From the NCBI GenBank assembly GCA_965240325.2, contig OZ251245.1, positions 124,001 through 188,000 of the forward strand: a stretch of 64,000 nt of DNA. Direction: 5' to 3'. Positions 24,660 to 29,463 of the stretch are shown piece after piece. Each line of letters begins with the position of its first letter. Positions within the stretch are counted from its first letter, which is position 1. The DNA is from Rebecca billardiae RCC1528. Taxonomy: Eukaryota > Protista > Haptophyta. The notes beneath the pieces were generated by a model. The model worked only from the letters and a program-made list of their open reading frames with translations, made no database searches and was not told the DNA's origin. The translations under genes and the position numbers were made by a program.

Positions 24660-27047
24660 TAGGGGGTCCATGACAGCAGCCCACTGATTTGTGATTTTCG
24701 ACAACCATGCGATTTAGGTGTCTGACGAGCGAGGCGCTTGCGAAGGCACCCACAAATATGTCCCGGAACCCAGCCCAGCCGTCAGAAGCACGCAAAACCG
24801 ACTCCGCGTGCCGTCGCGCGGTCGTGCGCGCGCGCCAGCTGCGCCACTGTGTCACAATACAGATTCAGCCAAACGTCAACGACTTGTTATGGCGGCTACA
24901 TGACGGTATATCGCCGAACTTACTTATTCATAACCGTTGCAACCCGCCCAAATAAAATTACGGCGGAATTGCTGATTTTTAGAAGGCACGATGAGTGCGC
25001 GTAGAGGGCGAGGAAAAACTACTCCAAGATCGAGCATGTTACCCATTTAATTAGAGACACGTACCCGTATATATGCGCATATCTACCCGCTTATTATATA
25101 ATGCGGGTGTGTTTTAAATATATATTCAGGGTGCTGTCAATATGAGGGTACCTTGTTCACTATTCGTGCTGGGTCATCCGAATAGGCCGCGCCGCCGCGC
25201 GGAGACGGCGGGCTCATGCCACTCGAACCGTGCCGCAGCAGGCCCGGACGGACCTGATGCGGGCGGCGGGCTGCGTGCCGGAGCACACTACCAAGCCCAC
25301 CTCTGAGCATGCCACCATCCCCATAGTCGTGAGAGAGTCCTCCGCCATCGAGGCTTGCGTGCGCAGACTAGCAGTCGCCGCCGCCGAGCTTGCCGCGGTC
25401 CGTTCGGCGACTTCCGTGCCCGTGCTCTGTGTCACCGGCGTCGTCGCCGTTCGTCGTACCCTAGCCCACGCGAGGGCGTCACCGGTCCACCAGTACTGCG
25501 GCGGACTGCGCGCGCTTCGCCGCGCGCTCGCCCTCGAGCTCCGCCGCTCTCCTCTCGCGCTCGAACTCGGCGCAGTCGGCAGCCATGGCAGCCCGCTCGG
25601 CCGCAGCTCGATCTGTGCCCCCGCTCGGTTGCGTTGGCGCGCAAGCTGGCGCGCGCAGCGTCGGCGACGGCGCGCGCGATCGCCTTGCGCGACGAGTTCA
25701 GCTCCACCTGCTGCTCCGTCAGGCGCACCTGCTGCTCCAAGATGATCGCGTGCTCAGCAGGAGTCACGCGCTGCTCGTGCAGCTGCACCTGCACGCGGCC
25801 TGCTGCGGACGCGCGCGGCGCGCTGGCGTCGGGGGGCGAGTAGAGGTCGCGGAAGGGGCAGCTGTCGTCGCCGGCGCCCAGCGACGTGTCGTCGACATCC
25901 AGCTCCGCCTTCCTCTCCGCCGCCGACGCGCCCTGCTTCCGGCTCAGGATGCGCTCCATGTCCTCGTGCTTGCCCTTCCACCACCTGTGCACGGTCATCA
26001 GCCAGATGCCGATCACCTCGAGCCGCGGCGAGTCGTGGCGCAACGAGATGCCGAGCGCATCCACGCAGACGAGCGTGAGCGCCTTGGGCTTCTTCGTCCG
26101 ACCGTCGCGCGCGGTCTGGGCGCACGCAGGGGTGAACACTCTGACCAACGGCTTGTGCTTCTTCGAGTTCTCAAGCATGAGCTCCACGAGACCACGAGCG
26201 TGCGGAGGAGGTCAAGGAGCATGAAGTCGAGCACCGATGCGTACCGCGGGCGAGTGCCGGCCACGCGCCAGCTGGTCGAGGGCTGTAGCACGTGGATGGC
26301 GCGCGCCGCCACCGCCGTCTCCTCGAGCTGCTGCGCGCTGACGTTGACGTCAGGCCGTAGCTCGGGCCTGCACGGTTGCTCACAGTCGAGGCCGTCCGCG
26401 GAGGAGGCGAGCCCCTCGGCGGTGCCGGCAGGGACCTCGGGCGGGTCGCACACACCCATGGGCACGCGTGCATCATCGTCTGCCGCGCCCTGGACCTCGT
26501 CATGCCCGGCACAGCGGTCCGCAAGTTGGTCGGCGGCAGCTGGCCCTTGCGGCAGAGGCGTCGCGGGCACGTCCGAGGGCGAGATGGCAGCGACGGGTGG
26601 GGAAGGAGACAGTGTCCAGTCGTTGTCGATGCCCATCCCACCATATTGCGCATGTTCGTCTCCGTATTGCTCTCCTGCACGTGCTCCTAGGACGCGCTCC
26701 TTGGTCGCGAGCAGCACACGTCGAGCACGCAGATTCAAATGATGAAGCACGAGCGTCGTTTGACCAGCGACTCCCAGCGAGAGCCCGGTCCACACGAACC
26801 GTGGCTACGTGTCCGTGTCCACCGAGTCGCTCGGCGAGGCGCCTGCGCCGATGTGGGCGCGCCCAATGGCGAGCGGACGGCCGTCGACGAGGGCCATCAG
26901 CCTTGCCGACCCCGTTCAGAGCTCCGCTCCCGCGCCGGGCCGAGCCGAGCGCGGATTTGGAATCTGCCATCGCGAAAACACGCCGAACAAGTTCTGAAAA
27001 GGAAAAGAAAAGAAATCAAAACTTGATTTAATCAGATGGACCCCCTA
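24660..27047. mobile_element. Cut-and-paste DNA transposon 'element A' (2,388 bp; hAT-like TAG...CTA termini; probably non-autonomous)
   Basis: Perfect 12-bp TIR TAGGGGGTCCAT (24660-24671) / ATGGACCCCCTA (27036-27047). 7-bp TSD GCGGCTG at 24653-24659 and 27048-27054. AT-rich subterminal regions with GATTT motifs. Confidence 0.88.
25432..26795 (-). pseudogene. Frameshifted coding sequence of unknown function inside element A
   Basis: ORFs 26013-26795 and 25432-26187 overlap in different frames, joining near LLRTLVV/ELMLENSKKHKPLVRVF. Codon pattern is protein-like and a coiled-coil-like tail continues in a further frame. No recognisable transposase catalytic motif seen. Confidence 0.5.
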
Positions 27048-27172
27048 GCGGCTGGCGACGGCGGCGCGGCGGTGTGACTAGTAGTTCCGGATGGCCCGGG
27101 TACGGTATATATATATAACTATATGCGCTTCGAGCGTGAGCCGAGGGCACTTGGCGGAGTGGTTAGACATCA

Positions 27173-27276
27173 TATATATATATATATATATATATATATA
27201 TATATATATATATATATATATATATATATATATATATATATATATATATATATATATATATATATATATATATATA
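27173..27276. repeat. (TA)52 microsatellite
   Basis: Perfect TA run between elements A and B/C. Confidence 0.97.
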
Positions 27277-27515
27277 GTAGCTATACTGACTCGCCCCTGC
27301 TGCCCGCCGCGAGGCCGTGACGTCATGCCGAATCATCTGCGTGCTGTCGCCGGCCGCGCGCGTGTCATCGAGTACTAGCTAGTGGGGCTATGTGCGAATC
27401 AAGCCAAGTGGGGTCAGAGCTCCGACCGTTACACTCTCGGGTGCCACAATCTCCCGAAATCTCTTATTAGCATGAACTATCACGCGGGTATTTACTTGGA
27501 CGAACTAGTTAGTAT

Positions 27516-29463
27516 TAGCCTGGTCCATCCCGATTTTCGCCAGTGAAAAAGCCTTTTCGGATTTTGGGCGCCCGATTTTTCTAGTCGCTCGTCGCGCTCG
27601 TCAAAAATCGCCACCGGCCGTCCGACCAAAGAAATAGAAATTCCGACGGCTCGCCGCGACGAGGTCGGGAAGGGGCTCGAGAGCCTCGACTGGACGACTG
27701 CGCCGCCTCATGTCAGGTGTAGTGCTGGACACATCGTTCGGGTGCCCCGGTGGTGTGCGTGCACACCTTGAGCGACATGTCTGCGTTGCTTCCGCCGCCC
27801 GCGGTCCGTCGCCAGGTCGACTTCTCGCCTGACGGCGCGCGTCGAACGCTCACCTGCTGGGTTGCGCGGCGCCTTCGAGACGGGCCACCTCGGGTAATAT
27901 GCGGGCCACGCGACGGCTCGTGTGGGCCACCGCCTACCCCTAGCATGTACTCGATGCCTTCACCAACGTTGGGCGCGCTGCGCATCGCCAACGCTTCATC
28001 CGGCCAGTCCCGTCACGTTTGCGCATGGGTCGTGCTGAGCGGCGGCTGTCGATTTGTGCTCCTCGTGGAGCTGTATGACGGGCTGGTGGCGAGCAGGATG
28101 GCTCGCCTTGCGGGGCTGGGTGTGTACAGTCGCAGTGTAGTGGCTGCCGGCTGACTCCCATCGCCTGGGTGCTGCTTTACCGTCATGGCCTTTGCTGCGA
28201 GCACAAGGTCGAGGATCGTACCGCGGTCTGCGAGGCAGAGTCGACGGAGTCGTCGCTTGAAGATGGTTGAGAGCGCTCATACGTCTTCCTTGATGTCGTG
28301 CGGCTACTCCAGCACGTCAGGCTCGCGCTCTGGCACGTGTTTGGTGTCCATGGGTGGCACATTGTGCCATTCGGGTGGCTCGGAAGCACGTGCTCGGGTG
28401 TCTTTCCCGTTTACGCGCGGTGGGCCAAGTCACCACGCAAGGCCAGAGCATGTCATGGCACGCAGAGGGTGCCCATGAACGATCCCCACCCCGGTGGTGG
28501 CCGTAGGCGCACTCGAAGCGGTCGCATCGTCACCCGCGGATCACATCAGTCCGCCGTTGAGGCTGTCGGGCGAGCAAAGACGTGCGAACTGACCCTTGGA
28601 CGGGCAGCTAGAATCGCGATTATGCCTCATCTAAGGACGCACATGTCGTCGTTGTAGGCAGTACTGATGCCCCAAGTGAAAGGGCGGGCGTGGCACGCGA
28701 CTTGACAGCTTGAAATACTCGATGCACGCCGCCATGGACACGCGATCCGGATCCATTGCGAACCTGCCGTGTGGCTCACGGCGGCGCGCGTTGTGCCGCA
28801 GATCGGCCAGTTGCCACGCAGGAGATGGTCTCCAGACCAGGTCCAGCACCTGACCGACTGCCGCACGCCTGGCCGGGTGGGAGTCCGGCCCTCTTCTTGT
28901 CTGCAGGAGTGCGCGGAAGGCCAGGCGGAGCCTCGTCCGACCACTGCACCCCGAGCGCCGCACTAATCGTGCAGCCTGGGACAGCTACCCACCTATGGCG
29001 AATATGTAACGACATAGTGGCATTTCAATTATACAGATCCAGAACTCATACGTATACGGGTACATTGCCCATAATATACGGGTATAAATGGGTAATATAG
29101 TCGATCTTGCAGTAGTTGAGTACGGCCACTTGCGCACAGACCACAGCCCATCCTAATGGCCTGCACCAGGGTTCATGCTCGCCTCGACGTACGCCAATAA
29201 GTAAGTTCGTGCGTTTGGGCTCATTTAGGCTAAGTACTTACCCACATTCGGACTGACGATTCTCTATGTGTCCGTAGTTGTCCGCGGCGCGCGCGCGCAC
29301 GCTCACGACGGGCCACGGATGCGAATTTTAGGCCGAAACTTTTGCTGCGCCCGGGCTGGGCCCATTTGTTACGCTGTTTCCGGGTGTGAGCGCGTGCCTA
29401 GGGGCCCGCGTTCATTTGGCGATAAAATCCCCGAAAGTGCTCCAGTGCGTTTGGACCAGGCTA
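27516..29463. mobile_element. Cut-and-paste DNA transposon 'element B' (1,948 bp), related to A and in opposite orientation
   Basis: Perfect 12-bp TIR TAGCCTGGTCCA (27516-27527) / TGGACCAGGCTA (29452-29463). 7-bp TSD TTAGTAT at 27509-27515 and 29464-29470. Repeated GATTTT subterminal motifs. Confidence 0.88.
27713..28963 (-). pseudogene. Decayed coding sequence inside element B
   Basis: A minus-strand frame reads EPPEWHNVPPMDTKHVPEREPDVLE*PHDIKEDV*ALSTIFKRRLRRLCLADRGTILDLVLAAK, interrupted by TAG/TGA stops and frameshifts. Family not recognised. Confidence 0.4.

Follow-up and report, generated by a model that had tools for sequence, protein, structure and literature searches.

Two non-autonomous transposons of the haptophyte Rebecca billardiae share an asymmetric long end with conserved islands at near-fixed distances from the terminus

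Two neighbouring transposons of the haptophyte Rebecca billardiae RCC1528, here called A and B, carry at one of their ends the same non-coding module, in which short islands of conserved sequence stand apart from strongly diverged spacers. Both lie in a stretch of 64,000 nucleotides (assembly GCA_965240325.2, contig OZ251245.1, forward-strand positions 124,001 to 188,000), which we call the window and in whose coordinates all positions are given. We propose with moderate confidence that the module may be the asymmetric long end of a probably hAT-like transposon family, in which a phased array of GGGTA sites and additional sites at fixed distances from the terminus would be bound by the transposase, probably overlapping the promoter of the autonomous parent. 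A and B themselves, both non-autonomous, are best read as representatives of two sister lineages within a single cut-and-paste family.

The window has a G+C content of about 80%, which falls to 58-66% at 24-30 kb. A and B are two complete cut-and-paste transposons with terminal inverted repeats (TIRs), both intergenic and oppositely oriented with respect to the region they share. Their TIRs are perfect over 12 bp and have the form TAG, two to three bases, GGTCCA (12/12 match), and sequence reading places a perfect target duplication around each element. The limits of the shared module were drawn from alignment, k-mer diagonals and the G+C profile.

24660-27047, minus strand: element A, a non-autonomous TIR transposon, each end of which reads inward as TAGGGGGTCCAT
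24653-24659 and 27048-27054: target duplication of A, perfect, 7 bp, GCGGCTG
27516-29463, plus strand: element B, a non-coding TIR transposon, each end of which is TAGCCTGGTCCA
27509-27515 and 29464-29470: target duplication of B, perfect, 7 bp, TTAGTAT
24660-25160, minus strand, read toward the terminus: long-end module of A
28965-29463, plus strand, read toward the terminus: long-end module of B

The interiors of A and B, already described as unrelated in appearance in the original prediction, show no similarity by BLAST, and outside the long-end module the two elements have only the terminal repeat in common. The module had been put at about 410 bp; a shared end region is indeed present, yet measured inward from the tip it reaches about 430 bp when judged by sequence and about 500 bp when judged by base composition. 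Its five predicted blocks were all found by sequence reading, k-mer match and alignment (distances are from the start of the block to the terminus).

25061-25071, minus strand: block 1 in A, TATACGGGTAC, 412 nt from the terminus
29053-29063, plus strand: block 1 in B, TATACGGGTAC, 411 nt from the terminus, with a second TATACGGGTA at 29075
25017-25049, minus strand: block 2 in A, a 33-mer identical to that of B at 29/33 positions, 390 nt from the terminus
29085-29117, plus strand: block 2 in B, 379 nt from the terminus, forming TATAAAT with its two preceding bases
24915-24928, minus strand: block 3 in A, AATAAGTAAGTTCG, identical to that of B at 14/14 positions, 269 nt from the terminus
29196-29209, plus strand: block 3 in B, 268 nt from the terminus
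24823-24835, minus strand: block 4 in A, GCGCGCGCGCACG, 176 nt from the terminus
29289-29301, plus strand: block 4 in B, 175 nt from the terminus
24769-24776, minus strand: block 5 in A, GGGCTGGG, 117 nt from the terminus
29353-29360, plus strand: block 5 in B, GGGCTGGG, 111 nt from the terminus

The claim that these blocks are locked in position holds for blocks 1, 3 and 4, which differ by a single nucleotide in their distance from the terminus, but not for block 2 (390 versus 379 nt) or block 5 (117 versus 111 nt). In B, block 2 is displaced by roughly one helical turn; this is compensated before block 3 is reached, and blocks 1 and 3 lie 143 nt apart in either element. Blocks 3 and 4 are 79 nt apart in A and in B. 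Over the last 120 bp the two modules are not collinear, block 5 lying 6 nt closer to the terminus in B than in A. Runs of (CG)n such as block 4 are frequent in this genome, and block 4 is informative by its position only.

How far the conservation departs from chance was assessed on one pairwise comparison, module A against module B. Aligned without gaps, the blocks agree at 88-100% of positions and the spacers at 32-39%, as compared to 25% for random sequence. The modules share 40 7-mers at near-equal distance from the terminus, whereas shuffled sequences share 0.57 on average and 6 at most, and two occurrences each of the 33-mer and the 14-mer in the 64-kb window stand against none in shuffles. 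Uniform divergence along the end, which the original prediction had named, for a family alignment, among the observations that would speak against it, is rejected by permutation of the columns of this two-copy alignment: neither the 29 matches of the best 33-column window nor the five identity runs of at least nine positions were reached in 20,000 permutations, and the longest run, of 14 positions, was reached in 85 of the 20,000. Since the spacers align without gaps and are still above random identity (31 of the 79 positions between blocks 3 and 4 are identical), they are evidently homologous, near saturation and maintained in length. Clumped conservation at the nucleotide level between near-saturated spacers of kept length supports the proposal that the module has a selected function in cis.

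Might such islands instead have been exchanged between otherwise unrelated elements by patchy recombination or gene conversion, with no selection at all? Conversion is common between copies of repeats, but its tracts would be expected to be longer and not to be limited to five islands of 8-33 bp. Moreover, the gapless homology of the spacer between blocks 3 and 4 indicates that the whole module descends from one ancestor and that the islands have merely changed less, and we regard this explanation as quite improbable.

The constraint acts on nucleotides and not on codons. Block 2 is open in one inward frame, in which all four differences between A and B are non-synonymous while 10 of 11 third positions are unchanged, and a protein-coding micro-exon was rejected on this ground. 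The possibility that the module is a nested miniature element was likewise discarded, as it has neither a second terminus nor a flanking duplication. BLAST of both modules and of both other ends against the window revealed no additional copy, and scans for block 2 in metagenome, viral and prokaryotic genome contigs and for blocks 3 and 4 in metagenome contigs gave no hit.

Around blocks 1 and 2 the module contains a further ordered feature, an array of GGGTA sites.

25040-25089, minus strand: GGGTA array of A, with three sites spaced 22+22 nt that lie 429, 407 and 385 nt from the terminus, the middle site being that of block 1
29053-29094, plus strand: GGGTA array of B, with three sites spaced 22+10 nt that lie 406, 384 and 374 nt from the terminus, the first site being that of block 1

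Two of the three positions coincide between the elements (407/406 and 385/384 nt), and the spacings are near whole helical turns. All sites lie on one strand, face the adjacent terminus and are inverted relative to it; no second cluster is present elsewhere within either element. The first site of B (GGTACAT) and the middle site of A (GGTACGT) resemble the terminal GGTCCAT, a resemblance to which we attach little weight. Apart from the inverted repeat, the opposite ends of A and B have nothing in common but motifs of the AAAATC type, located within 60 bp. Read outward, AAAATC occurs in the terminal 60 bp at three of the four ends, the right end of A having only GAAATC, and these motifs are more ordinary candidates for terminal binding sites.

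A Pfam search of the open reading frames (ORFs) identified no transposase or nuclease gene in A or B, RuvC-type nucleases included, in line with the earlier failure to recognise a RuvC or Fanzor motif, and both copies are non-autonomous. The transposase of hAT elements is a DDE enzyme that has a BED-type finger and, at its C-terminus, a hAT dimerisation domain. The 14 ORFs analysed matched no Pfam family except for one chance-level match to IBB, and the longest of them (385 aa) is an antisense artefact. Element B is without codon periodicity. Element A carries a decayed gene.

25690-26500, minus strand: decayed orphan gene inside A, reading toward the module; G+C at third codon positions (GC3) 0.94-0.95, with a frame change near 26190

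Codon usage of this orphan gene is host-like (GC3 of about 95%). It has no Pfam family, no match in the PDB and no relative among 1.84 billion representatives, its sole hit, a bacterial repeat protein, having been rejected as a chance match. A word search, exact look-ups and an Atlas search likewise yielded nothing, and a phage collection contained no match. The gene could stem from captured host sequence, or else be a lineage-specific gene of the element.

Contigs of two public sequencing runs with different organism labels, X1 and X2, were compared with positions 27277-29700. Both runs hold a form in which 27514 is joined to 29482 without B, with small differences at the junction and with GGCGTTA between the two sides; since the duplicated 7-mer is present there only once and in part, the site was more likely empty from the start than vacated by excision. 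Two additional runs of the X1 sample gave no match to this stretch. Other contigs depart from the reference exactly at 27516 and 29463 and thus represent other copies of B in other flanks. From the B-free allele and the copies with other flanks we conclude that B is polymorphic, multi-copy and recently mobile even though it is non-coding. The few differences listed for the module of B lie outside the block cores, two of them turning TATACGGGTA into TATGCGGGTA, but the sampling is too thin to carry weight. In one X1 contig the match to B is limited to its terminal 108 bp (29356-29463); the sequence upstream is unrelated and carries the motif AAAATCCCC, which suggests another subfamily that may share the tip without the module. 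As neither A nor B encodes a transposase, selection can act on these copies only for mobility, and both derivatives have kept the whole module while their interiors were replaced.

Taken together, the clumping of conservation, the kept spacing, the helical phasing, the presence at one end only and the fact that two independent non-autonomous derivatives kept the whole module suggest that the islands are DNA sites read by proteins. In the mechanism that we favour, the islands would be cis-acting sites, with three end-like GGGTA sites 375-430 bp from the tip, block 2 beside them and, farther out, block 3 with its tandem AAGT and the (CG)n block as additional sites at fixed distance from the cut site. 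A transposase, perhaps together with a host DNA-bending protein, would bind these sites, thereby mark this end and assemble the cutting complex on it, so that the sequence between the sites would be free to drift while its length is held. The AT-rich zone of the module probably doubles as a promoter region in the autonomous parent.

A role in transcription might even be the whole story. Of the three options that the original prediction had offered, a transposase-binding architecture and a promoter are both viable, and the module could be no more than a promoter with its leader, or else a 3' flank, that belongs to the gene of the autonomous parents, was conserved in their lineages for the sake of expression and passed to A and B without any part in transposition. 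The G+C profile is parallel in the two modules (50% at the tip, 72% at 151-200 bp, 36-48% from 200 to 450-500 bp and at least 70% thereafter), and no comparable AT-rich zone is found at the other ends of A and B. In a genome of about 80% G+C, a zone of 36-48% that is confined to this end, 200-500 bp inside the tip, fits a promoter, as does the rise to at least 70% at about 500 bp in both elements. TATA-like tracts (inward strand, immediately interior to block 1) and the TATAAAT of block 2 (outward strand) point in the same direction, and since the orphan gene of A reads toward the module, the latter could also be a 3' region. Transposase sites and promoters are moreover known to overlap, and transposases can be sequence-specific activators of their own copies (bioRxiv 10.64898/2026.08.24.746577). 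Promoters, however, tolerate small indels, whereas the spacer lengths are exact here. Nor would an explanation by transcription alone readily account for the fact that two independent non-autonomous derivatives kept the whole module when everything inside it was replaced, or that B, to which a promoter is of no benefit because it is non-coding, still spreads. We therefore consider a module that serves as promoter or gene flank only to be possible but somewhat doubtful.

Then again, several observations weigh against a docking region for the transposase. Only two diverged copies were compared, so that each site is backed by a single comparison. At 375-430 bp from the tip, the array would stand at the outer limit of the cis-requirements known so far, and the block motifs are missing from the terminal 100 bp as well as from the other end. 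The X1 contig with only the last 108 bp of B implies that an element may use the tip without the module. Block 2 would fit a core promoter too, with TATAAAT in B or AATTAAAT in A about 25-30 nt before AGTAG. The assignment to hAT is equally qualified. The ends of hAT elements are short inverted repeats starting with YARNG; A, which starts with TAGGG, conforms to this pattern, but the fifth base of B, which starts with TAGCC, does not, and the target duplications of both elements are 7 bp and not the 8 bp of hAT. Finally, we infer the identity of the binder and the need for the sites in cis, and binding by the transposase purely so, from the sequence.

The outward strand of the module invites yet another interpretation. 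Block 3 does contain the predicted GTAAGT, together with a tandem AAGT, and this GTAAGT is the only canonical splice donor, located 260-265 bp inside one end and facing outward. The module may be an outward transcription unit with a core of TATA box and start in block 2 and a short non-coding first exon ending at the GTAAGT of block 3, from which transcripts would leave the end across the terminus and might be spliced into the flank. A TATA-like box precedes AGTAG by about 25-30 nt in both elements, GTAAGT follows 85-95 nt later, and an AG after a pyrimidine-rich stretch and a CTGAY about 70 nt beyond it are aligned in both copies; a counterpart is known in the ends of Mutator elements (bioRxiv 10.1101/2023.06.05.543741). 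But the putative exon has no ORF common to A and B, the AG and CTGAY matches are expected by chance, and splicing does not need exact spacer lengths. Such a unit seems unlikely to us. If it existed, each insertion would launch a spliced read-out transcript into neighbouring DNA, and the module would be a built-in gene-trap or promoter-donor cassette under selection in two lineages, a new kind of interaction between element and host. An introner-type, intron-mimicking transposon was considered separately and rejected, because a donor and an acceptor are not present near both termini and the elements are intergenic.

The third of the original options, a structured or guide RNA encoded in the end by analogy with the omegaRNAs of TnpB and Fanzor elements, is not supported. 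In its favour are the conserved islands at an element end and a pairing, proposed by RNAalifold, of part of block 2 with part of block 3. This pairing (7/8) shows no covariation, and we estimate that about one such match is expected by chance. The outward strand between block 2 and the tip is no more stably folded than shuffled sequence (z of +0.62 and +0.40 for the two copies), 150-nt pieces of both strands do no better (z of -1.1 to +0.5), and the consensus fold of the two copies, at -37.8 kcal/mol, is at the level of column shuffles (-39.3 ± 5.0 kcal/mol; z of +0.30), 127 of 200 of which equal it. Rfam returned no family, only artefacts on an (AT)n tract, and neither tRNAs nor, with TRF, tandem repeats were found. 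Together with the lack of a RuvC-type or other Pfam domain in the ORFs, and with inverted-repeat ends and 7-bp duplications as expected of a DDE transposase, this leaves an end-encoded RNA with almost no credibility.

Element B is itself inserted into a third small element, which we call C.

27407-29889 approximately (27407-27515 and 29464-29889): element C, host of the nested B, about 535 bp without B

The inverted ends of C are AG(T/A)GGGGTCAGAGC, and contigs of both public runs start to match exactly at its left end, 27407. No clear target duplication of C was seen; a pair AATCAAG/AATCGAG fits only if the left end is shifted by 3 nt. Elsewhere in the window, long (AT)n microsatellites are found at 27172-27283 and 14812-14896, in intergenic stretches of lower G+C content. 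An inverted repeat of 1898 bp has arms at 53826-55723 and 58752-60649, which are 99% complementary and 3 kb apart. A long array at 47943-49120, with a periodicity of 12 nt, 81 register copies and very GC-rich units rich in GCC/CCG, is probably a coding low-complexity repeat.

If the islands of A and B are docking sites for a transposase, they provide a map of the sites required in cis, and of their spacings, for an undescribed algal family with 7-bp duplications. Such a map would help to annotate the many non-autonomous copies of the family and to develop a transposon tool for a GC-rich haptophyte, and it would leave our understanding of how such elements work unchanged.

Among known systems, some share no more than a general trait with the module. 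The omegaRNA of TnpB and Fanzor elements is likewise a conserved non-coding feature at one element end, but A and B have no RuvC gene, no signal of RNA structure and no Rfam hit, and instead carry classical inverted-repeat ends with target duplications. Tc1-like elements with an inverted repeat/direct repeat (IR/DR) arrangement of the Sleeping Beauty type differ in that their target duplication is TA and not 7 bp and that inner direct repeats of their terminal site are found at both ends, whereas the end-like GGGTA sites occur here at one end only and are inverted relative to the adjacent terminus. Closer to the outward-transcript idea are the ends of maize Mutator elements, which contain outward-reading promoters (bioRxiv 10.1101/2023.06.05.543741) and so offer a counterpart in which a promoter inside a transposon end reads into the flank. 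There the promoter lies within the long Mu terminal repeats and was shown by RNA data, whereas an outward transcript from A or B would be hypothetical.

The likeness to hAT elements goes further. In Ac/Ds, a member of this superfamily, subterminal sequence is needed for transposition. Tol2 needs 200 and 150 bp of its two ends, and the subterminal requirements of Tag1 differ between its ends and include a minimal spacing (PMC10368747). The 150-250 bp of subterminal sequence required by Tol2, Ac/Ds and Tag1, differently at each end, are comparable to the requirement proposed for A and B. These elements differ in having dense arrays of one short motif at both ends, while A and B have varied islands at one end and at strict distances. 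In Hermes, also a hAT element, the ends are dissimilar over about 450 bp, and BED domains bind the left end only, at short subterminal repeats around AAGT (PMC10368747). Dissimilar ends of several hundred bp with repeated sites beyond the terminal repeat at one end only are likewise what we see in A and B, and the tandem AAGT of block 3 recalls the AAGT cores that are putative BED sites of Hermes (PMC10368747). Hermes, however, makes 8-bp duplications and has its characterised sites within the first tens of bp, as opposed to duplications of 7 bp and an array 375-430 bp from the tip. What A and B share is best described as an asymmetric subterminal cis-region of a DNA transposon, and as such of a known kind, with hAT identity not proven. 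Most likely, their long end is an ordinary feature of such elements, encountered here in a little-studied algal family.

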